Below, in pieces: positions 2,826 to 55,579 of a stretch of 64,000 nucleotides of DNA. The position numbers were made by a program, and so were the translations under genes. The notes below the pieces were generated by a model. That model saw only the letters and a list, made by a program, of their open reading frames with translations, had not been told where the DNA came from and ran no database searches. The DNA is taken from positions 1 through 64,000 of IMG/VR virus record IMGVR_UViG_3300040801_001224. One strand, given 5' to 3'. How positions within the stretch are numbered: the stretch's first letter is position 1; each line of letters begins with the position of its first letter.

Positions 2826-3100
2826 AGTTCATATACGTGATAAGAGATACAGATATAAGTAAAGTCAATAACTTATTAGAAGAAGAACTGGGCCATATCC
2901 CATCGTACGAACGTTCCCCATATGATGAAGGTCAAATGTATATGCCATCCATATATAAAGTTACGTATATACTCGGGGAAGAAGAAGAACTATATCTAAG
3001 ACTTAGGTGGGGAAATATCAGTAACTTTGGCCCATATATAACATTTATGATGAGAAAGAACAGTATATATGCTTATGATAAACATAAATTCATTAAATGA
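2822..3100 (+). CDS. hypothetical protein, family A
   Basis: EEEELYLRLRWG. Confidence 0.8.
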   Translation: MKFIYVIRDTDISKVNNLLEEELGHIPSYERSPYDEGQMYMPSIYKVTYILGEEEELYLRLRWGNISNFGPYITFMMRKNSIYAYDKHKFIK

Positions 3101-3187
3101 TATCTATATAATGGGCAGAATCATTAGAAAATATCTTAACGATGCGATACTGGTAAAAATGGGCATGGCTCGGCTGGGGAGAAAAAG

Positions 3188-15877: not shown

Positions 15878-16060
15878 ATGAAACTTCAAGAAGACATTAA
15901 GAGACACGTAAAAGACGAGAAGTATTTGAGTATTGTTAAACTGACTGATATATTTGACGCAGTAGTTGAACAGGCACATGCTAACTTTGGTAATTTTGAT
16001 GAGTACACCAACAACTTCTTACGCCAAGCATTAGAGGAATCTATTAAAGAAAAAGGCTAA
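15878..16060 (+). CDS. hypothetical protein
   Basis: Fills the gap in the operon. Confidence 0.7.
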   Translation: MKLQEDIKRHVKDEKYLSIVKLTDIFDAVVEQAHANFGNFDEYTNNFLRQALEESIKEKG

Positions 16061-16131
16061 AATAGTGGTTGACATCCCAACCACTTATTGCTATAATAGT
16101 GGCATAAGTTAATAAACAGTTAGGAAAAACG

Positions 16132-16416
16132 ATGGAACTATTAGACAAAATTGCACTCATATTAGGATACCTTGTAATGGTAGGCGTGGGTGTATTAATT
16201 GTAGCAATTGTACTGGAACAGATCGTTAGTTACCGTAATGACCATGAGTTCTTTACGTTAACTATATTTAAATTTGGTGTTGTGTACGCTCGCAGTGAGC
16301 AAGCACAATGGAAGATTGAAGCATACAGACCATCAGCTAAGGGTAAGCGAGTACACTTCTCAGCACCCATGTGGTTTAACAAGATTTTTAATAACGTTGG
16401 TGGACGTGAAGTATAG
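16132..16416 (+). CDS. membrane-anchored hypothetical protein
   Basis: Own promoter; N-terminal TM segment. Confidence 0.8.
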   Translation: MELLDKIALILGYLVMVGVGVLIVAIVLEQIVSYRNDHEFFTLTIFKFGVVYARSEQAQWKIEAYRPSAKGKRVHFSAPMWFNKIFNNVGGREV

Positions 16417-16447
16417 TCCACTCAGTATCTAAACCGAGGAAAAGAAA

Positions 16448-16816
16448 ATGAACCTGGCACAAGAATTAGTAGCAAACCGAAAAACAATCGCTGAAGCAAA
16501 TAACGCTGAGAAGAGATCTTATGGCGTTAAAGTAGAAGCGGCAGTTGGCGACTTAAAAGTTAAAAAGAACCTACGTACACGAGAAGTACCACAGGAACTG
16601 GCTCGTAAGTCTCCAGAACTCCCCGGACTGGGTAAAGTATCACGACGTAAGACAGACAACCCACTGGTTAAAGAGTTACTGGCTAACGGTGAAGTCATTG
16701 GTGAAGCAGTAGACACTCGTAAAGAGAAGCGTTGCTGGACTATTACTATCAATGGTAAGACAATTGAATGTCACACAATCAGCAAAGGCATTCGTCAGTA
16801 TGGAGCGCAATCATAA
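16448..16816 (+). CDS. basic hypothetical protein
   Basis: SD GAGGA. Confidence 0.8.
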   Translation: MNLAQELVANRKTIAEANNAEKRSYGVKVEAAVGDLKVKKNLRTREVPQELARKSPELPGLGKVSRRKTDNPLVKELLANGEVIGEAVDTRKEKRCWTITINGKTIECHTISKGIRQYGAQS

Positions 16817-17061
16817 TGGATAAGAAAACTGGATTCCTATTTGTAAGACTGGTACTGATTACCTGGGCATTTAGTGTGGCACTGTTTCTAACATTTGCTG
16901 GTCCTGGTAAAGACCTACAGTTCTACACCACTATTATTGTACTCATGGGTGTAATCAGTATAACACTTGCTCCATTCATGGCACAGATCAATGACATGGC
17001 ACAGAGTGCTATTGATCGGATGTTGAACAATGAAGATAGTAAACAGTCTAAAGAGTCTTAA
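16816..17061 (+). CDS. membrane protein
   Basis: TAATG coupling; two TM segments. Confidence 0.75.
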
Positions 17062-17152
17062 GAACCGTCCCGGCTGTAAAATAGTACGCAGACGTGGCAA
17101 GGTATTTGTAATCAACAAAGAGAACCCAAAGTTCAAAGCGAGACAACGATGA
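17030..17152 (+). CDS. rpmJ: 50S ribosomal protein bL36, zinc-independent (YkgO/RpmJ2-like) type; not in ORF track
   Basis: [40 protein letters not shown] matches bL36 end to end; ATGA-coupled to the next gene. Confidence 0.92.
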
Positions 17153-17400
17153 AATACGTAGAAGCAATCAACCAGTACCAACTATGCGGATGTAAGAACA
17201 TTGTTGTTCGCACACGATCCGGTAAAGAGTATGAGTTGAACCGAGACGTAGTTGAGAACGCACATGAAGAAAACGGTGACCTATATGTATATGGTGGTTA
17301 CTGGAAGAAAGTTCGCACAGCATTGAGACCCAAGTACCACCACAAATGGTTCTGGTTATCAAATGTAGAGTTTGTCCGACAGGGAGGACTGACACAGTGA
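17149..17400 (+). CDS. hypothetical protein
   Basis: ATGA overlap with bL36. Confidence 0.75.
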
Positions 17401-17618
17401 TAAACAACAAAGCAACATATGTCTGTTCTAAAAGCCATCTGGTTATAGAGCGAAATGAACATAAGCTATTCCTAAATCTGGGTGAGCTTGATGAACGACA
17501 GATAGTTCCACTGGATGCTGGTACACAGTACCTCAGAGGTGAAACCATTACTGGTGACCAACTGGAAAAGATCTGGGGGTTTTATTCTGACGTTGAAACT
17601 TATTGGTATGAAGCATGA
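17397..17618 (+). CDS. hypothetical protein
   Basis: GTGA overlap; SD GGAGG. Confidence 0.7.
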   Translation: MINNKATYVCSKSHLVIERNEHKLFLNLGELDERQIVPLDAGTQYLRGETITGDQLEKIWGFYSDVETYWYEA

Positions 17619-17857
17619 AACTATTAGCTGAAAATTATAACACCAAAGTCTACCAGAAAGACAACGATAAGCCTGGTCTCCTGATCATTCATCAGGGTGA
17701 ACCAGGTGACACTCGTGACACTCTCGTAGCCAACCTATCAGGTATATGGCCAAACACTGGTAAGTACTTACTAACCAGAGTGACTAAACGTGATGGCGCA
17801 TTCGACAGCCATTGGACTGGTTTTATTCCCTCCTATAAAATGCCCGATTTATCTTAA
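17615..17857 (+). CDS. hypothetical protein
   Basis: ATGA overlap. Confidence 0.75.
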   Translation: MKLLAENYNTKVYQKDNDKPGLLIIHQGEPGDTRDTLVANLSGIWPNTGKYLLTRVTKRDGAFDSHWTGFIPSYKMPDLS

Positions 17858-17921
17858 AAAAGTGGTTGACATGTGGTCCTAGCTTTGCTATAATGTGTTT
17901 ATACAAAGTTAGGAGTTAACC

Positions 17922-46822: not shown

Positions 46823-49800
46823 CTATGGGCATCCGCGGAGGAATGTGCCAATATTTGTGCCTGATAGTGCTAATGTGTTAGGTAATCCATACACAATGCT
46901 CGCAAAATTGTCTGTCCATAATGCCTGTTCACCGCCAATAATCATTTCACTCTCACCGCCAATCCAGACATCTGTTCCTGCTGGGCGTATTGAAATCTCC
47001 GCCGTATTACGTTCTGCTCTGTTGACACCAACCAGTGTGTTTCCATCAATGCCACGGTATGTAATCTTTTCCTGTCCAATCCAGGCAACCTGCGGTGTTG
47101 CTACAGTTGCTTCAGGCATTACAGACGCATCAGTTAATTCTACTTCAATGTCACCCTGGGCAAAGTCTGCGGCTAATGTCGTATTACAGCGTGATTTGCG
47201 TTCATAAGTCATTAACCCTGACATGTTTACATGCTGGCGATAATTAACCTCTGGGTAGTCAATCTCCACTGTTGATCCTGTCTGATCTGGTTCTCCGTCA
47301 AACTGGATTGCTAGGAAACTGTTATCCCAATCCTCTGAGCCACTGTCCCAGGCTTCCTGATCCCAGGCTTCTGGTTCTTCAAAAGTATAATCAGTGCGTG
47401 GAACACCGTCTACACGTACTTCTGTGAAGCCACGTACTACAGGGTATTCACCAATATTTGAACCCGGCAATGTAACCGTTACCCCCTGTGTCCTAACGTC
47501 TAACACGACGCCTTCGTGCATCTTCATTGGTACGAGCTCTTGTGGATTACCCGCCCTGTATAATGGGTCTAGGAAGAAATCGCCTTCAGGAAGTATAACT
47601 TCATATATGTCAATGACATCTGTTGGCAGTAGATCTTCAGCCATAATATAAACAGTTGAGTTGTAGATATAGTAGTTTAGTAACTGTTCACCATTTAAGT
47701 AAACACCCATAACACTGTAATCAATATCCTGTGTGGCCGTTTCAGTTGACAGATCAAACTCAACAGTGCCTGGAGATATGCTATCAACAAACTGATCACC
47801 AGTTAAACTTAATAGTGGTGCTCCTGGTTCAAATGTGTCTGGCACTAGGCCGGCTGCTTCATAATAAACTACAGGTGCGTCACCATCCCAATCTTCTTCG
47901 TCAAATGGAAGTATGTCCCATGGAATGCTTGGCGTAATGAAGTCATCAGCGTTAATGTAGTTGATCCATTCCTGGCATTCGTACCCTGGCAGTTCATCTT
48001 CAGCAAGCTCTGGGCATTCAACTCTGTTGAATCTCATCTTAACAAGTTTGTTGTCAAATTCAGTAACAGTTGCTTCCACTAGATCAAGTGTCTTAAATGC
48101 GTTCTTGTAATCACGCACTTTGGATTGGTAAGGTTTAACTTCATTAACATATTCAAGTAAACTTTCAAATGGATCATTAACTAGCGTAGGAGCCTGCTCT
48201 AAAGGTATAGCTTCCTGGTTTAGTGTAACATATGTTGTTTTAAACACCCAATCCACATCCTTCTGTTCTGACAGCACATAGTTGATCATAGCAAACATTA
48301 GCTCGTTCTGCTTGACAAAGTCATCACCAATAAATACGTGATTACGCATTGCGTCTAATATTTCACGTAACTCAGAGCGTAAGTCTTCCAGTATATAATC
48401 AGTATAAAGTGTTGACAAGATCTCCACATTACCTTCGTCATTGATAATCCAGTAATTGCTTGTTGAAACCCAGTTACTAAAATCAGTAGCATCGAATGAT
48501 TCCATGTTAGCAAATAAATCGTTTGCTTTTTGTGTGAATACTTTTCTTGCCGCTTGCTTGTCAATGAACCATGACTGACGTGGCCTGTTTTCAGTACCAT
48601 ATTTTTCAGCAACACTTAACGCCGGGTTAGGCACTGCTAATTGATATAGTGTTTCACCTGGGTTGTCATCGTCAGTACCCAGTAGGTAAGCCCCTGGCAG
48701 ATTAACAATGTATGGCATATCTGCTGTTGATATAGTCTTAGTAAACCCAACCAAAGAGTCAGTCATCTTGTCCCAGTGTATGTCTTTAACCGGTGAGTTT
48801 CTGTTACCATCACCCATTAGATACCACTCAACGTGTAAGTTAGTATCTTTATCAGTATCTTTATAGTTGATCTGGAATACTGCCTCGTTATTCTCGAACA
48901 AATCTTCTAAGTTAGCAAACACAAACTTGTCTGTGTCAATTGGTGAGAACCATTGGTAACCCTGTGCTTTAGGATTATTCATTAGCTGTTCTATATTAGC
49001 AATACTTAATGTACGGTTCTTGTCGTTTTCTGGACGAGTAGCCAAACCACGAACCCAGAAGTAATAGTAATTAACTTCAAAACCTGCGTCATCATTAAAC
49101 ACAGACTCAACAGTATAATCAGTCGTGTTTCTTGGTGTTCCAGCGCCATCATAGCTTGCTGGTGGATTTAAACTTTCAACCCATTCGTAAACAGATAGAT
49201 CACTTCCTGGAACTTGCTTGCCCCAACGTTCCCTTCTGTAACGCATGTCATCTTGTTCATAATCGTAATAAGCAAACGAGCTTAAGTCTAACCATGTCTT
49301 GCCCACGTCACGTTTTGTAAAGCGTAGTGACTCGTTTATTCTCGACTCGTTGTCTGAGTTTGTATAACGTGCTGGGTCAGTATATGACTTGATGTCAATG
49401 TTTTGTTCTGCTATACCTGGAATAAATCCTTTGACAGGGTCATATATATTGACTAGCGCAAGCGTGTCTTTTGTATCTGCTTCATATACAAATGCGTTCT
49501 TAATGATTTTTGTGTTGACACGTTGGTTATCCCAACGTCTAACCGCTGTAAACTCAGTTGCTGTGGCAGTATATACAGTAGAGTCATCCTCAACATATAG
49601 TATGTCGCCTTCAAAGCCAGGGTCAAATGCTGGCAGTACTGTAAATCTTCTGCTAGAAAATACTTTAACTTCGTCAGTTAACTCAAAGTCTGTAAGTTGT
49701 ACCTCTTCGCCTGTTGCGTCAAATAATTTTAATGGGCCTAGAGAATCTGACTGTCTTTCATAACGGTAAACGATGTCATTAACAACAACGTAACCATAAT

Positions 49801-52800
49801 TTATAATTTGTCCTGAACCAGCAGTATCATCAACATAAAAACCAAAGTCATTGTTGTTCTCAATTGTTGGTGCGAACAGTATTGTGTTGCCATCATTTAA
49901 TTGTGATATAGACATTGTTCCATTGCCATAATCAGTGACAAGGTTATATATGTCCCATGTATCGTTAAGTGTGCGGGCTATACCAACATTAACGTAATCT
50001 GTTACATTAGTGCTTACTAATGAATCACCGCTAAATGTTAGTTCACTTAAGTCTTTAGTGTTCAGTGGACCTGCTGTTGGCATTACTGCCATTGGTTCGA
50101 TCATGCTCCATAGCCCAGTCTTATCACAGCCACGTGTTGGTTTTGTTAACCAACTTTCAGTGTCATCCTTGTCGATTAATACTAGATCATCTGCTGGATC
50201 ATCTTCAGTGACTTCATATCCTAAAATAGCAATAGCACGGTCTACACCACCATCCCAGGGTAGTGCTGACCAACCATCAGGTTCAACTGACGGATCCCAC
50301 TCCACTAAAGGAATGTAAACGTTAGGTTCCTGTGTATAGCCTGAACCTGGATGTGTTACTTCAATACTTGCCACTTTGCCGTCATCACCCAGTATAGCAA
50401 CGGCTTGGGCGTGATCTGTAATTGGATTAGTTTCATTAATGGAAGGTCTTATTTCAATTAATGGTGGCTCGCTGTATGTTGATTCAACATTAACTAGCAC
50501 AACTTCCTTAACAAAACCAGATGTTTCTGGGTTAATATCTAGCTGAACAATCTGTGGATTTGTTTTAATTTGTCTAGGATCAATAGCTAGGTCTAACTGC
50601 TGTGTTGTACACGTAGCGCCTGAATGGCCTAAACGTAACGCAAATTCTTCAAACACCTCAATAGTCTGATCAGTGCCATCTACAATGTTTGTAGAGCGTA
50701 GGATTTTATTAATCGCATCCTCTGTACCCTTCTGTCTCACAACGCCCTGGTAGAACTGATACTGCGTATCCTGGCGGATGTCTAGATCAACTAAGTAATC
50801 TCTATTCTCAAAGCCAATAATGTGACGTGCTGTATCCTCAACTTCCTGTCTGTCTAAACGTGATTCTGTATCGTGGAATCTACGGATGGATTCAGCAAGT
50901 GTATCCAAGTTTGGAATTAAGCGGTTGTCATCTGTGATAACATAACCAGGTGCTTCACGCTTACCACTCCAGTCTAGGGTACGTGGACCAATGAAACGTA
51001 GGCGGTTTTGTCTAACACCTAGCAATGGATCGTAAATAATGTCTGCGAATGATGTCTTGTTATCAAATGTCACACGATGTTCTGTTTCAGTAGCGTACAC
51101 ACGTAATAGGTATATGCCACGCTGATCTTGGTTCAATGGCTTAACATTTACCGTAAAGTCATCACGCTCAACAACTAGGTCTTTGGCTTTAATCTCAAAT
51201 CCATTTTCGTCTAATATACTGTATACACCGTTGTATTGTATTTTCAAGTCACCTGCGTATCCACGTGCTAGGTCTAGTTTTGTGTAACGACTCGATGGGC
51301 TCAGACGTATTGCTTGACCTGGTGCCCAGTTTGCTGTTACCCAGAATAAGTATTCCTTGGCAGACTCTAGCCAATTCTGTAAGCGGTAATTTATGTTATC
51401 TGTTTCATCAAATTTCCATCCAACAGCTTCTAAATAGTCACCATAACCGATTAAGAAATCAAATACTTCTTGTTCTGTTTGGAAAATTGTACCATAAGGG
51501 ACTGTCTGTATTACGCCCTGCTGGCCACGCTTTGTGTATGAAACTTCAATACCACCTGTTGATGGCAACTTGCTTAATCTATTCCAGTTGTCATCATCGA
51601 AACTTCCAGGTGCTAGGTCTTCTTTAGCAGAATAATAGACACCATTGTATTTTACAATGTCGCCTTTCTGGTACGCGACACCTCGGTCGAATAATGTAAA
51701 TGGTGCTTCGTCATTGCCCACTCTTACTTCTTGTTTAGGAGCAAACTGATCACGTGGAATAATCTTAAAGTTATTGCTGATGATGTCGTAACCGAAGACT
51801 CTGTAAGAGCCATCTTCTTGAGCCAACACAACAACGCCTGAATATGTGTATTCATCAATAGCAGGTGATGTGTGTATGTTTGTCTCAACGTTTTCTTTTG
51901 GAATTAATAATCCGTTTGTAGTTGACTCAGCACTTGTTCCTTCTAGGAATGTTTCAATAGTATCTGGGTTAGTGAAGCCGCCCATCTTATGCCCTAGCTT
52001 AACGCCTAAACGTCTTACTTTGTCGCCTAGTTCTGATTTAATTGTGCGAGCGTTGAAGAATAGACCATCAGCAATCCATTGTTGATAACCTTCTCTGTAT
52101 ACTAATTCGCCATCAATTAATTCACCATGTACTGATAGTGAACTGTACTTTCTTCTGTCCAAAGTTTCTGCGCTGATATGTTGCGACGGTTGCGCTAATG
52201 ATGTTGCGTTGTCGTTCGTATCCCAGAATCTGTAACCAAATTGTGCTGGACGCATAAGGAATAAGAATTCCATTACTGCGAACGGATAAACTTCTGTGTT
52301 CATCCAACCTGATTCGGTAGGAGCTTGGTCACCAATTAACCAACTGTTATCGCTGTTAGTCGTTAGAACGTAGTCAATATCAATTTCATCTGGTGATAAC
52401 AGATCACCACTGGCGTCAACAGGTATTACCATTCCTGGACGAGCAAAGCGTGAGTCAACGCCTTGGCGTGAGCCCATTCGTATGATGCCAGCTTCTAAAT
52501 CGGACCACATGCCAGTATTAGTACTTGTGTAATTTCCTAGATACTGAACGTCCCACCAGTCCGGCTTCTTAGCAAAGCCTAGCATCTCCCATGGGTGAGT
52601 GTGAGGGCGGAATGTATCATAGAAGTATTGGTATAACCCTTTCCAGTGTCCAGGTACGCCATGCTCACTGTAGTTCCAGGTCTTCCAATCACCTGCGTCA
52701 AACGTTGTGTTGTCTTGCCATTGGGCGTTAACATTGTTCGACCATTTGCTGAATGACTGACTATAAACAGAAACATATTCACCATAGCTGTATTGCGTAT

Positions 52801-55579
52801 CACGGAATGCGCCTGGCTTGATATCTTCTTTTGTTAGTGGCGGGATATAGTCACCTAGGAATTTTTCATTAATTCCATTATAAATTCTTGTTTCAAATTC
52901 TAATATTAGATCGTCAATAAAATCACTACCAGTTGATGGTGTGCGTGAGCCATCGTGGCCCACGATGACATCCATTGGAGTAACAAAAGATGTGTCAGTT
53001 GTTTTCTCTGGAGTATATGTTTGGTACATCCCTAACTTAGACGGTGTGGCTGGAACAAATGCTGGCTCAACATTTTCATAAATATAAAATTCAGCCGTTT
53101 CGCCAGCCAATACACTGAAATCAAACACAAGTTGGTCGCCAGTCACAGTAAATAACTCTTGTTCTATATGATTGCCGTTAATGTAGGCATAAACTTGGTT
53201 GCTTCTATCCGTTAAATCAACATTCTTGGATAGTGTGAACGTGTCTGTATCTGCTAGGGGCGTTTCACTATCAATAGTTGGTGTGCCCCAGGCAAACATA
53301 TATGAATACTGAAATGCTTCGTCAAATTGTGTGCCGTTTGTTAGGCGTGTAATTACTTCATCAAAGTTTGAACGTGCTGTGCCAAAGCCTGCTGTTTCTA
53401 TTTCTAGTTGACGTGCTTCCTTAATGAATCTATTCTTATAGCGTGTATATTCTTGTGACGCAAATCGTATGGCAGTCACAACATCTAGCTCTTTACTTGA
53501 GCTTGATAGCATTGCTAATGGCAATGGATCACGTGTTTGTAACATATATGTGCCAAGACTGTTGTCCTGACAAGTATCACGGAAGTTATTGCTCGCACCT
53601 AATGCTTGGCCAGTGAATCCTGGTTGATTCTCAATAATACTTACAAAGTGTTTGTACATATCATTCTGTGAGTATTCAACTACTTCACTGTTGCCTGCGT
53701 TATTTTCTAATGCGTCTGGAATCTCATAATAACCACGCGATCCTAAATCTTTATTTCCATTTTTATAAGAGTAAAACTCAATAACATCATTAGCTTTGGT
53801 TGATGTGCCGATTGTTACTGATGTGCCATTTACAGAGAATGTATCCTCTAGGACACCGTTTACTCTTACAGTTAGATCATCTGGAGTTTGACTAATAACA
53901 AACGTGTCGTTGCCATCCTGTGTTACAACATAACGATCAATAACATTTTGTTCTGTCTGGCCTAACACTAGAGAACTTTCAGTGTCAGCAGTGTCAAATG
54001 ATTCCTGAGCCGCCCACGTAGTTTTTAGTTCATCATTTATTTTGTAGTAGTAGAAGCCTGGGATTTCTGTTGGGTTGTCTTCCACTGATTCCTGAGTAGT
54101 TGCTCTAACAGCTTCTAAATCATGTTCAAATACAATGTCACCCACCTGACCCAGTCCAGTGAATTCTAACGGGAAACCTAACTCAGTGTCGTCTACAATG
54201 CTGTATTCGTTTACCTTATAAGAGAATATTTCGTTGCCAACAAACGATGGAAAGCTATATGTATTTTCGTCATCCAACGCCACACCATTGCTGTCATATA
54301 AACTGTATAAAGGTGCTTGGTTAATGCTGAACTTTTGATTGGCAACTTGTAGCCAACGTCCACCTGACACGTAATCAACACCTTCGAAGTAGTAGGTGTA
54401 CCCAGCGTAATTCTCACCGCTTTCAACAATAACAATATTGTCTTCACCTAGTAATGTACTCAGTGTTAGATTAATGATACCACCGGTTGTATCTACGTCA
54501 TATATTCTACCATTAGCTTCAATTAAAATCTTGTCACCAGTCACAAGGTTTGAGTTGTCAACTGTGACATCGCCGACTATGGCGCCTTCTAGTTCAGAAA
54601 ACGTCAGGGTATCTTCCACATAATCAATATAGTCTAGGAAGTTTCTGCCAGATTTATATAGTTCAATGTTTTTCTTAAATTCTATAATTGGGCGTGACGC
54701 AACTACGTATGCGCCAATTTCTTCTTCAAGGAACGCTAGAACACCAAACACTAAATCTCTATGATACCAACGGTTAGTGCGTGACCAAGCATTGTTGTCT
54801 TGTGCGCCACGTTCAATAGTAATGTAATCAAATGGTAAACTTGTTTTAATAGCATCCCAGGGTAGCTGATCCCAGAATCCATTTTCTGTAGAAACGTTTT
54901 GCCCACTCAACTCTGCTCCACCATCCCATGGTAAGAATTCAAATTGGTCGAATGCCGTTAATGGATTTGGCAGAGGGACAAGCTCAATGCCACAACCAAC
55001 GCCTTCAAGAATATATTCTTCACCTGCGTTAGCTGGGTTATTAAATGTAACGTGTATACCTGAACTTGCTTCAATCGTTTTGCTGTCAACTGTAATTGTA
55101 TAGTTTAGTTGGCCTTCGATGTCAGCAGGCGTCACAGTAGGGTCTAACTGAATAGTAGGCAAGTCATTTGTCATCCACAAATAGTTCTGATAGTTAATGA
55201 ACTTGTCAGCATCAATTGGCGGAGCGAAACTATAAGGTGTTGTTTTAAATAAGCGGTCGTGGTTGTTAATTAAACCGTTATGTTGTTTAATGTAGTTTAG
55301 GAAGTCCTCATAGAACATCACATTAGTTTCTTCTAATGTATCCGGATCACGTGAGAACGCAATAGGCTCTAATTGATAATCCACACGATTAAACGAACCT
55401 TCACTCAGAAAATAATCATTCTGTGGATCATAACGGCCGCCTACTCGACGTCCAATCCAACCAATTTCAGTATCAGCTTGCTTCTTCTGAAATAGTTGCT
55501 CAAATGTTGCTTCAAAGAATTTCTTCTGTGTGTCAGTTTGTAATACAACCGGTAATTGGCTTATTATTGTATTCTTCAT
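46823..55579 (-). CDS. very large baseplate wedge/structural protein (gp7-like position)
   Basis: 2918 aa; follows the gp6-like gene; YVNEVKPYQSKVR motif; PWD repeats. Confidence 0.8.
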   Translation of the reverse strand: MKNTIISQLPVVLQTDTQKKFFEATFEQLFQKKQADTEIGWIGRRVGGRYDPQNDYFLSEGSFNRVDYQLEPIAFSRDPDTLEETNVMFYEDFLNYIKQHNGLINNHDRLFKTTPYSFAPPIDADKFINYQNYLWMTNDLPTIQLDPTVTPADIEGQLNYTITVDSKTIEASSGIHVTFNNPANAGEEYILEGVGCGIELVPLPNPLTAFDQFEFLPWDGGAELSGQNVSTENGFWDQLPWDAIKTSLPFDYITIERGAQDNNAWSRTNRWYHRDLVFGVLAFLEEEIGAYVVASRPIIEFKKNIELYKSGRNFLDYIDYVEDTLTFSELEGAIVGDVTVDNSNLVTGDKILIEANGRIYDVDTTGGIINLTLSTLLGEDNIVIVESGENYAGYTYYFEGVDYVSGGRWLQVANQKFSINQAPLYSLYDSNGVALDDENTYSFPSFVGNEIFSYKVNEYSIVDDTELGFPLEFTGLGQVGDIVFEHDLEAVRATTQESVEDNPTEIPGFYYYKINDELKTTWAAQESFDTADTESSLVLGQTEQNVIDRYVVTQDGNDTFVISQTPDDLTVRVNGVLEDTFSVNGTSVTIGTSTKANDVIEFYSYKNGNKDLGSRGYYEIPDALENNAGNSEVVEYSQNDMYKHFVSIIENQPGFTGQALGASNNFRDTCQDNSLGTYMLQTRDPLPLAMLSSSSKELDVVTAIRFASQEYTRYKNRFIKEARQLEIETAGFGTARSNFDEVITRLTNGTQFDEAFQYSYMFAWGTPTIDSETPLADTDTFTLSKNVDLTDRSNQVYAYINGNHIEQELFTVTGDQLVFDFSVLAGETAEFYIYENVEPAFVPATPSKLGMYQTYTPEKTTDTSFVTPMDVIVGHDGSRTPSTGSDFIDDLILEFETRIYNGINEKFLGDYIPPLTKEDIKPGAFRDTQYSYGEYVSVYSQSFSKWSNNVNAQWQDNTTFDAGDWKTWNYSEHGVPGHWKGLYQYFYDTFRPHTHPWEMLGFAKKPDWWDVQYLGNYTSTNTGMWSDLEAGIIRMGSRQGVDSRFARPGMVIPVDASGDLLSPDEIDIDYVLTTNSDNSWLIGDQAPTESGWMNTEVYPFAVMEFLFLMRPAQFGYRFWDTNDNATSLAQPSQHISAETLDRRKYSSLSVHGELIDGELVYREGYQQWIADGLFFNARTIKSELGDKVRRLGVKLGHKMGGFTNPDTIETFLEGTSAESTTNGLLIPKENVETNIHTSPAIDEYTYSGVVVLAQEDGSYRVFGYDIISNNFKIIPRDQFAPKQEVRVGNDEAPFTLFDRGVAYQKGDIVKYNGVYYSAKEDLAPGSFDDDNWNRLSKLPSTGGIEVSYTKRGQQGVIQTVPYGTIFQTEQEVFDFLIGYGDYLEAVGWKFDETDNINYRLQNWLESAKEYLFWVTANWAPGQAIRLSPSSRYTKLDLARGYAGDLKIQYNGVYSILDENGFEIKAKDLVVERDDFTVNVKPLNQDQRGIYLLRVYATETEHRVTFDNKTSFADIIYDPLLGVRQNRLRFIGPRTLDWSGKREAPGYVITDDNRLIPNLDTLAESIRRFHDTESRLDRQEVEDTARHIIGFENRDYLVDLDIRQDTQYQFYQGVVRQKGTEDAINKILRSTNIVDGTDQTIEVFEEFALRLGHSGATCTTQQLDLAIDPRQIKTNPQIVQLDINPETSGFVKEVVLVNVESTYSEPPLIEIRPSINETNPITDHAQAVAILGDDGKVASIEVTHPGSGYTQEPNVYIPLVEWDPSVEPDGWSALPWDGGVDRAIAILGYEVTEDDPADDLVLIDKDDTESWLTKPTRGCDKTGLWSMIEPMAVMPTAGPLNTKDLSELTFSGDSLVSTNVTDYVNVGIARTLNDTWDIYNLVTDYGNGTMSISQLNDGNTILFAPTIENNNDFGFYVDDTAGSGQIINYGYVVVNDIVYRYERQSDSLGPLKLFDATGEEVQLTDFELTDEVKVFSSRRFTVLPAFDPGFEGDILYVEDDSTVYTATATEFTAVRRWDNQRVNTKIIKNAFVYEADTKDTLALVNIYDPVKGFIPGIAEQNIDIKSYTDPARYTNSDNESRINESLRFTKRDVGKTWLDLSSFAYYDYEQDDMRYRRERWGKQVPGSDLSVYEWVESLNPPASYDGAGTPRNTTDYTVESVFNDDAGFEVNYYYFWVRGLATRPENDKNRTLSIANIEQLMNNPKAQGYQWFSPIDTDKFVFANLEDLFENNEAVFQINYKDTDKDTNLHVEWYLMGDGNRNSPVKDIHWDKMTDSLVGFTKTISTADMPYIVNLPGAYLLGTDDDNPGETLYQLAVPNPALSVAEKYGTENRPRQSWFIDKQAARKVFTQKANDLFANMESFDATDFSNWVSTSNYWIINDEGNVEILSTLYTDYILEDLRSELREILDAMRNHVFIGDDFVKQNELMFAMINYVLSEQKDVDWVFKTTYVTLNQEAIPLEQAPTLVNDPFESLLEYVNEVKPYQSKVRDYKNAFKTLDLVEATVTEFDNKLVKMRFNRVECPELAEDELPGYECQEWINYINADDFITPSIPWDILPFDEEDWDGDAPVVYYEAAGLVPDTFEPGAPLLSLTGDQFVDSISPGTVEFDLSTETATQDIDYSVMGVYLNGEQLLNYYIYNSTVYIMAEDLLPTDVIDIYEVILPEGDFFLDPLYRAGNPQELVPMKMHEGVVLDVRTQGVTVTLPGSNIGEYPVVRGFTEVRVDGVPRTDYTFEEPEAWDQEAWDSGSEDWDNSFLAIQFDGEPDQTGSTVEIDYPEVNYRQHVNMSGLMTYERKSRCNTTLAADFAQGDIEVELTDASVMPEATVATPQVAWIGQEKITYRGIDGNTLVGVNRAERNTAEISIRPAGTDVWIGGESEMIIGGEQALWTDNFASIVYGLPNTLALSGTNIGTFLRGCP

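Follow-up and report, generated by a model that had tools for sequence, protein, structure and literature searches.

An unannotated 40-codon open reading frame (ORF) in a jumbo phage genome is a genuine, intact phage gene for a type-B (zinc-independent, C-) form of ribosomal protein bL36. It lies in the window analysed here, which is the first 64 kb (64,000 nucleotides) of an IMG/VR virus record of 328,096 bp that is rated 100% complete and has a G+C content of 40.0%, and it runs on the plus strand from an ATG at 17030 to a TGA at 17150-17152:

17030-17152, plus strand: type-B (zinc-independent) bL36, 40 aa, unannotated; recognised from HMM scores, ligand loss, selection and conserved residues

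A hidden 40-aa bL36 gene had been proposed at these coordinates in an initial annotation made from the sequence alone, with a search against Pfam Ribosomal_L36 (PF00444) suggested as a check. This search matched the ORF product with an E-value of 1.1e-17 and 64.2 bits, against a curated gathering cut-off of 26.1 bits, with residues 1-39 aligned to positions 1-37 of the 38 in the model. A six-frame search of the genome with PF00444 gave 62.2 bits at 17030-17146. The NCBIfam model for 'type B 50S ribosomal protein L36' (NF002021) also exceeded its curated cut-off of 70 bits, scoring 79.1 bits end to end (residues 1-40 on positions 1-41 of 41), while the equivalog for the C+ (zinc-binding) form, TIGR01022, scored just 29 bits. 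The best solved chains were all type-B bL36 proteins within ribosome structures, namely 24yw_6 (E 5.5e-13), 9hig_3, which aligned to the phage protein without gaps, 28ye_Z and 6i7v_C5 ('L36 2'). The fold of bL36 is a three-stranded sheet of the zinc-ribbon type, and its site in the 50S subunit is the H42/H89/H91/H97 pocket. The phage protein spans the family from first Met to last residue without extension or insertion, and has a pI of 12, with 14 Lys and Arg among its 40 residues.

As had been claimed, the gene escaped gene calling. The products of both flanking genes (81 and 83 aa) are present in a 15-billion-protein collection, from the 328,096-bp contig itself, and the product of the bL36 ORF is absent from it, so the ORF was evidently missed by annotation. 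PHROGs likewise has no family for the phage protein. There are good grounds to exclude chance, contamination and decay as accounts of this ORF.

An alignment with the C+ paralogues of Haemophilus parainfluenzae and Pseudoalteromonas placed the four zinc-ligand columns at R13, C16, N29 and F35 of the phage protein, so that one of the four ligands is kept and the Cys3-His ligand set is lost, as in type B. C16 is the only Cys in the protein, in agreement with the zinc-independent, single-Cys form that had been described. Among the residues conserved in at least 90% of 54 type-B sequences, a sample picked by similarity to the query, 21 of 22 are retained, and such residues presumably contact rRNA; the exception, R34K, is common to the phage protein and a copy from a sibling phage contig discussed below. 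The one-residue deletion after KNR and the terminal QR that the initial annotation had singled out are both present, the former as a real one-column gap relative to 41-aa forms, but neither is unusual. The same 40-residue register occurs with NRPGC in H. parainfluenzae and Pseudoalteromonas and with RPGA in Actinobacteria (Nocardiaceae, Corynebacterium, Dietzia and Streptomyces), and the ARQR ending is frequent in Xanthomonadales, Piscirickettsiaceae and Pasteurellaceae and is also found in solved chain 24yw_6. Both are therefore ordinary bacterial type-B variants rather than phage-specific traits. As a description of the ORF the initial annotation was correct throughout, since the scores and the ligand alignment agree.

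The phage context that had been claimed also held. Large minus-strand genes match phage families for the baseplate wedge, the baseplate hub and tail fibres. Of these, the baseplate wedge protein shares 42% identity with its counterpart in Pseudomonas phage PA5oct and 35-40% with those of Salicola phage SCTP-2, Agrobacterium phage Atu_ph07, Sinorhizobium phage Phosso, a jumbo Vibrio phage and jumbo phages of Erwinia, Serratia, Pectobacterium and Yersinia. The genome is that of a jumbo myovirus whose relatives are found among jumbo myoviruses of Proteobacteria. Beside the 1275-aa baseplate wedge gene lies an ORF of 2917 aa (46823-55579, minus strand) that had no Pfam match at E-values up to 0.001. 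The G+C content of the bL36 gene (40.7%) equals that of the genome, and Logan contigs of the source DNA run carry the ORF without differences, save for one unassembled 31-nt gap. Given the complete record, the structural genes, the composition, the sibling contig with its copy among homologous early ORFs, the source-DNA contigs and the phage-specific promoter cassettes on both sides, the gene is placed inside a bona fide viral genome and not in a host flank or a contaminant. Neither megablast nor blastn matched the region to anything in INPHARED. The gene is missing from a complete 364.6-kb relative of this phage and is therefore dispensable for the wider group. The 'direct terminal repeat' of the record is an exact repeat of just 23 bp, which looks like a circular-assembly overlap rather than a physical terminal repeat, so coordinate 1 of the window is arbitrary.

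A related phage, represented by a 6-kb ENA contig (L002), carries the same bL36 gene at 90% amino-acid identity. The two copies differ by 18 synonymous and six non-synonymous changes, with a dN/dS of 0.034 that derives from this one sequence pair and from saturated synonymous sites. The 100 nt on either side of the gene are only 33-37% identical between the two phages, the L002 neighbours that are homologous to those of the window share 68% (one) or around 40% (four) identity, and an ORF on the strand opposite bL36 reaches 53%, far below bL36 itself. In this comparison, the phage bL36 is under strong purifying selection. No metagenome contig scanned contained the exact 26-nt pattern of the 5' end of the gene, and a protein-pattern scan of metagenome contigs returned only matches of at most 75% identity.

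The gene is the fourth of seven plus-strand cistrons located between two perfect sigma-70-type promoters:

16069-16097, plus strand: perfect sigma-70-type promoter, TTGACA-17-TATAAT with a TG extension, heading the bL36 unit
16132-16416, plus strand: cistron 1, 94 aa, no family match
16448-16816, plus strand: cistron 2, 122 aa, no significant family match
16816-17061, plus strand: cistron 3, 81 aa with hydrophobic stretches, called by JGI/IMG; its last 32 nt overlap bL36
17149-17400, plus strand: cistron 5, 83 aa, ATGA overlap with the bL36 stop, no family match
17346-17618, plus strand: cistron 6, longest ORF 90 aa with an uncertain start, no family match
17615-17857, plus strand: cistron 7, 80 aa, last gene before the next promoter
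17866-17894, plus strand: next perfect sigma-70-type promoter, start of the following unit

No terminator was predicted between the two promoters. The early-operon setting proposed for the gene is thus well founded on sequence, as perfect promoters flank the seven cistrons, and the 32-nt overlap with the upstream gene and the ATGA overlap downstream are both as had been described. Exact TTGACA-17-TATAAT promoters are a genome-wide feature, with 71 on the plus strand and two on the minus strand against 0.2 expected in shuffled sequence. Fifty of those on the plus strand lie outside the window, and those within it start at the following positions:

2542, 4392, 7015, 7926, 8588, 10053, 11325, 12216, 12935, 13366 and 13920, plus strand: exact promoters, first half of the list for the window
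15346, 16069, 17866, 18872, 19840, 20358, 21568, 23389, 29330 and 60145, plus strand: exact promoters, rest of the list

In many promoters of the window the -35 hexamer is flanked by a GTGG...CCAC inverted repeat and a AAACAGTTAGGAG leader is present, and a local repeat search around bL36 found these promoter cassettes alone. This repeated arrangement resembles the promoter-stem-loop cassettes known from T4-type phages.

The ribosome-binding site of the bL36 gene is weak, consisting only of a GGA 11 nt upstream, and the start codon sits 32 nt inside the preceding gene; the L002 copy has a GAGGA site and a 4-nt overlap. Predicted RNA folding around the start codon did not differ from that of shuffled sequences (z -0.6). 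Three metatranscriptomes from the same sample (around 45 million letters each), which consist of contigs only and so cannot show absence, had no contig on 14500-19500.

The nearest named proteins to the phage bL36 are type-B bL36 proteins of Nocardiaceae (80% identity), followed by those of Alphaproteobacteria, Xanthomonadales, Pasteurellaceae and Pseudoalteromonas (68-78%). A tree built from 41 alignment columns put the window and L002 proteins beside an actinobacterial clade of 40-aa forms with support of 99/95, and an AU test did not reject (p 0.47) a clade of the phage proteins with those of Haemophilus and Pseudoalteromonas, in which NRPGC is also found. The actinobacterial homologues sampled have a G+C content of 59-68% and a GC3 of 83-93%, and the composition of the phage gene speaks against a recent high-G+C (actinobacterial) donor. 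A sample of 401 genomes from the class of Pseudoalteromonas contained no bL36 with more than 75% identity. The source sample was a microbial mat. The host may be a proteobacterium that relies on Shine-Dalgarno sequences, as several features suggest: the hosts of the relatives, the Escherichia coli-type promoters, the frequent AGGAG leaders, a two-piece tmRNA and the 40% G+C content.

This tmRNA is part of a larger set of translation genes in the 328,096-bp genome, which encodes bS21, a bL12-like protein and 25 tRNAs in addition to bL36 (positions are those of the whole record):

185438-185710, plus strand: bS21, 90 aa, directly after a ClpX-like AAA+ ORF
255950-256300, plus strand: 116-aa protein with a bL12 C-terminal domain (30.7 bits)
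124181-124404, plus strand: two-piece (permuted) tmRNA, Rfam RF04321, 95.6 bits

The bS21 protein has at least 14 metagenomic homologues at 65-87% identity, none of which carries a bacterial name. The tmRNA score compares with a gathering score of 47 bits for RF04321, while the betaproteobacterial tmRNA model gave 66 bits, under its threshold of 84; ARAGORN read the tag as ENDEIFALAA. The 25 tRNA genes, also identified by ARAGORN, span 261544-290925, and one of these (266270-266347) has an 8-nt anticodon loop that was read as a four-base anticodon (tttg). Searches of the whole genome for bL31 (PF01197), bL33, bL32, uS14, bL34 and bL28 gave no match.

The window's phage is not alone in encoding bL36. 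In LR756501, a metagenomic phage of 735 kb, a bL36 of 38 aa was left unannotated; it retains two Cys residues and scores 77 bits on PF00444, and the bS21 of this phage is at 542936-543088. Four IMG/VR contigs carry stand-alone bL36 ORFs of type B or related forms, with G+C contents of 35-62%:

LR756501.1, 343502-343615, minus strand (3001-3114 of extracted locus L133): bL36
L003, 6001-6123: stand-alone bL36 ORF
L004, 3876-3998: stand-alone bL36 ORF
L126, 4001-4126: stand-alone bL36 ORF
L128, 848-964: stand-alone bL36 ORF

In some of these four contigs the genes around bL36 are ORFans and members of phage families. Both the L003 and the L004 copy stop at ARQ, with the last residue missing. Besides bL36, L004 encodes a small terminase subunit, and on L003 lie an early protein-kinase-like gene and one homologous to a gene of the window's phage. 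Host-flank contamination was weighed for these two contigs; their neighbouring genes are not bL31 and include some phage families, but L003 is classed as a provirus of 33% completeness, which leaves the matter less certain. A further group of around 20 Pseudomonas-like provirus records (L005-L024) encodes a 51-53-aa type-B bL36 with a lysine-rich tail (for example at 5959-6159 of L005), on the strand opposite to flanking RecT-like, RecE-like and phrog_4801 genes. Upstream of the gene these records feature TTGATA...TAAGAT and a conserved 18-nt near-palindrome (GATAYGTWATWACRTWTC), which was found only in these loci among the 306 examined. Contamination by host flanks was considered for these provirus contigs and rejected, as phage recombination genes and a PHROG family flank bL36. 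Apart from the 735-kb phage, tblastn matches to bL36 in INPHARED were also rejected, since they were to bacterial contigs or fragments of 1-4 kb. The records concerned (AFYI01000003.1, AGRM01000003.1, CAKLQH020000003.1, OR851287.1 and others) include Salmonella contigs of 515-582 kb, a 240-kb 'Acinetobacter phage MD-2021a' with an annotated rpmJ, and the 1-4 kb fragments, and represent contamination of that database.

All of the other viral bL36 proteins tested exceed the PF00444 cut-off, and no bL31 neighbour was detectable at their loci where this was tested. They share just 54-77% identity with the window's protein and are spread across the tree, on which the 'phage' label needs 6-8 changes, suggesting several independent captures. 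A broader picture can be sketched tentatively from these loci, although it may well be wrong as a whole: zinc-free bL36 would be a recurrent and systematically unannotated viral class that arose by several captures, carried early and beside bS21 by lytic jumbo and huge phages and as a stand-alone moron with a Zur-like operator by temperate Pseudomonas phages, through which phages tap the zinc-controlled paralogue switch and late 50S assembly. If true, viral replacement reaches a part of the ribosome that was thought inaccessible.

For the function of the phage protein, we favour a reading that we consider probable as a whole, in which early transcription, occupancy of the ordinary bL36 pocket and the upkeep of competent ribosomes without a need for zinc go together, because the family residues are retained, selection is strong and the genome has other translation genes. 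Host sigma-70 RNA polymerase would transcribe bL36 early in infection from the consensus promoter cassette, and the protein would take the usual bL36 pocket in 50S subunits of the host, either in particles just completed or in ones that lack bL36. The finishing of late 50S particles or the refilling of empty pockets would then keep up the count of fully competent ribosomes while the phage takes over host gene expression. A zinc-free protein would do so whatever the zinc supply, as one item of a phage translation kit with bS21, the bL12-like protein, the tmRNA and the tRNAs. It is the timing of transcription, translation, ribosome incorporation and the benefit to the phage that we infer here; the sequence shows the identity and integrity of the gene, the loss of three of four zinc ligands, purifying selection, the phage context and the promoter setting. 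Judged by its sequence, the protein is likely to be incorporated into ribosomes, and ribosome remodelling may reasonably be inferred, since the near-invariant residues are kept and the genome holds the rest of this kit. In E. coli, the two bL36 paralogues share one rRNA pocket, are functionally interchangeable and replace each other on existing ribosomes; free bL36A has a short life, and the loss of bL36 lowers in vitro translation by about 30% (PMC9959377). For these reasons, a phage that shuts off its host could profit from a bL36 of its own. Against the favoured reading stand the three small metatranscriptome runs with no contig over the region, the weak ribosome-binding site, the internal start, the 364.6-kb relative without the gene, and the pocket itself: bL36 is buried in rRNA rather than surface-exposed, and its exchange on mature ribosomes is described as sterically difficult (PMC9959377).

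The initial annotation had also raised zinc liberation, for which we found no specific support. Zinc economy would be the selected benefit if the phage protein displaced or pre-empted the zinc-binding bL36 of the host, either sparing or releasing zinc for phage metalloenzymes or sustaining translation in a zinc-starved host whose Zur-controlled paralogue is no longer inducible after host shut-off. The phage protein is indeed a C- form with one of four ligands. Like bL36, the bL31 and bL33 families occur as C+ and C- forms. Ribosomes form a large reservoir of zinc in the cell, and C- paralogues are considered to release it (PMC8531726). The bL36 genes of the Pseudomonas proviruses stand alone behind their own promoter-like site, where the near-palindrome overlaps a -10-like hexamer, a position known for Zur operators (PMC8531726), and, judged by this position only, is possibly such an operator; in addition, a published list for uncultivated viruses includes bL31 and bL33 (PMC6375957). 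The window's gene offers a different picture. Type-B bL36 proteins that serve in zinc starvation are under Zur-box control and in an operon with bL31B (ykgM-ykgO, PA3601-PA3600). Neither hallmark was found for the phage gene: its unit has a consensus promoter, no site in 15900-17200 resembled a Zur box at up to seven mismatches in the 23 positions of the consensus used, and the genome lacks a bL31 partner and the other families searched for (bL33, bL32, uS14 and bL28). In whole-genome PF00444 searches of five bacteria, H. parainfluenzae and Pseudoalteromonas had both forms, whereas Lysobacter, Thalassospira and Dietzia (three of five) yielded type B alone, so that 'type B' alone does not mean a zinc-starvation paralogue and the phage may have copied its host's sole bL36. 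The Dietzia genome was that of Dietzia aurantiaca, with no zinc-binding copy. Displacement from a buried pocket within one infection cycle is doubtful against the days that it takes in stationary-phase E. coli (PMC9959377). We regard zinc economy as an unlikely selected benefit.

Two further accounts have less in their favour. The position of bL36 among early ORFans typical of host-takeover genes, its pI and the binding of the 50S subunit by early proteins of other jumbo phages (PMC10914614) would fit an extraribosomal or interfering role, in which it binds other RNA or a host factor, or alters host 50S assembly. This is distinctly improbable for a protein that retains almost all near-invariant residues and is neither extended nor interrupted by insertions, under purifying selection as strong as the ancestral function would predict. 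That the gene is a non-functional passenger, whether a recently captured host fragment or a chance untranslated ORF, would accord with its absence from gene calls, its poor translation signals with the 32-nt overlap and the lack of a contig over the region in the three small, contig-only metatranscriptome runs. This account is very hard to credit given the Pfam E-value of 1e-17, the intactness from first Met to last residue, the dN/dS over saturated synonymous sites relative to a divergent sibling phage, the fully ameliorated base composition and the far lower conservation of the opposite-strand ORF. Ribosome upkeep through the ordinary pocket thus remains the reading that we prefer.

What is new here is bL36 as a virus-encoded ribosomal protein; viral ribosomal proteins are a kind already known, and this one is not unique to the window's phage. 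A full-text literature search found no paper on phage bL36. The survey of Mizuno et al. (2019) included PF00444 in its HMM set, yet bL36 is not among the proteins listed (PMC6375957), and the huge-phage paper of Al-Shayeb et al. (2020) names S1, S4, S21 and L7/L12 (PMC7162821). Since both neighbours of bL36 were called and bL36 was not, the case also illustrates how ORF-length cut-offs conceal real auxiliary genes. The zinc-free form would connect phage infection with the zinc economy of the host.

Among known systems, the phage protein is closest to the bacterial type-B bL36 (YkgO/RpmJ2) of E. coli and Pseudomonas and to the sole bL36 of Xanthomonadales and many Alphaproteobacteria. The bacterial and phage proteins match NF002021 over its full length and are alike in ligand loss, length class and near-invariant residues, at 68-80% identity. 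The bacterial type-B genes examined lie directly downstream of an L31-like gene, whereas the phage gene has no bL31B partner, and it differs further in the lack of a Zur box, its early phage operon with a consensus promoter, and R34K. Mizuno et al. listed bL31 and bL33 in uncultivated aquatic viruses (their Supplementary Table 2; PMC6375957), where they occur in metagenomic viruses only. These are likewise small large-subunit proteins, but each is distinct from bL36 and occupies another ribosomal site, and this genome encodes neither. Virus-encoded bS21 and bL12 (PMC6375957, PMC9723584, PMC7162821) are comparable to the phage bL36 as cellular ribosomal genes under purifying selection, and this genome carries a bS21 and a bL12-like gene of that known viral kind as well. 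Viruses are said to favour surface-exposed, exchangeable ribosomal proteins (PMC6375957), and those found in viruses (bS21, bL12, bL9, bL31 and bL33) are thought to be loosely bound and exchangeable. In contrast to viral bS21 and bL12, bL36 is described as buried rather than on the ribosome surface and as hard to exchange on mature ribosomes, so a selected phage copy would suggest action on 50S completion or on the exchange of bL36 paralogues, and the reach of phages may thus extend to a region of the large ribosomal subunit that is buried and assembles late.
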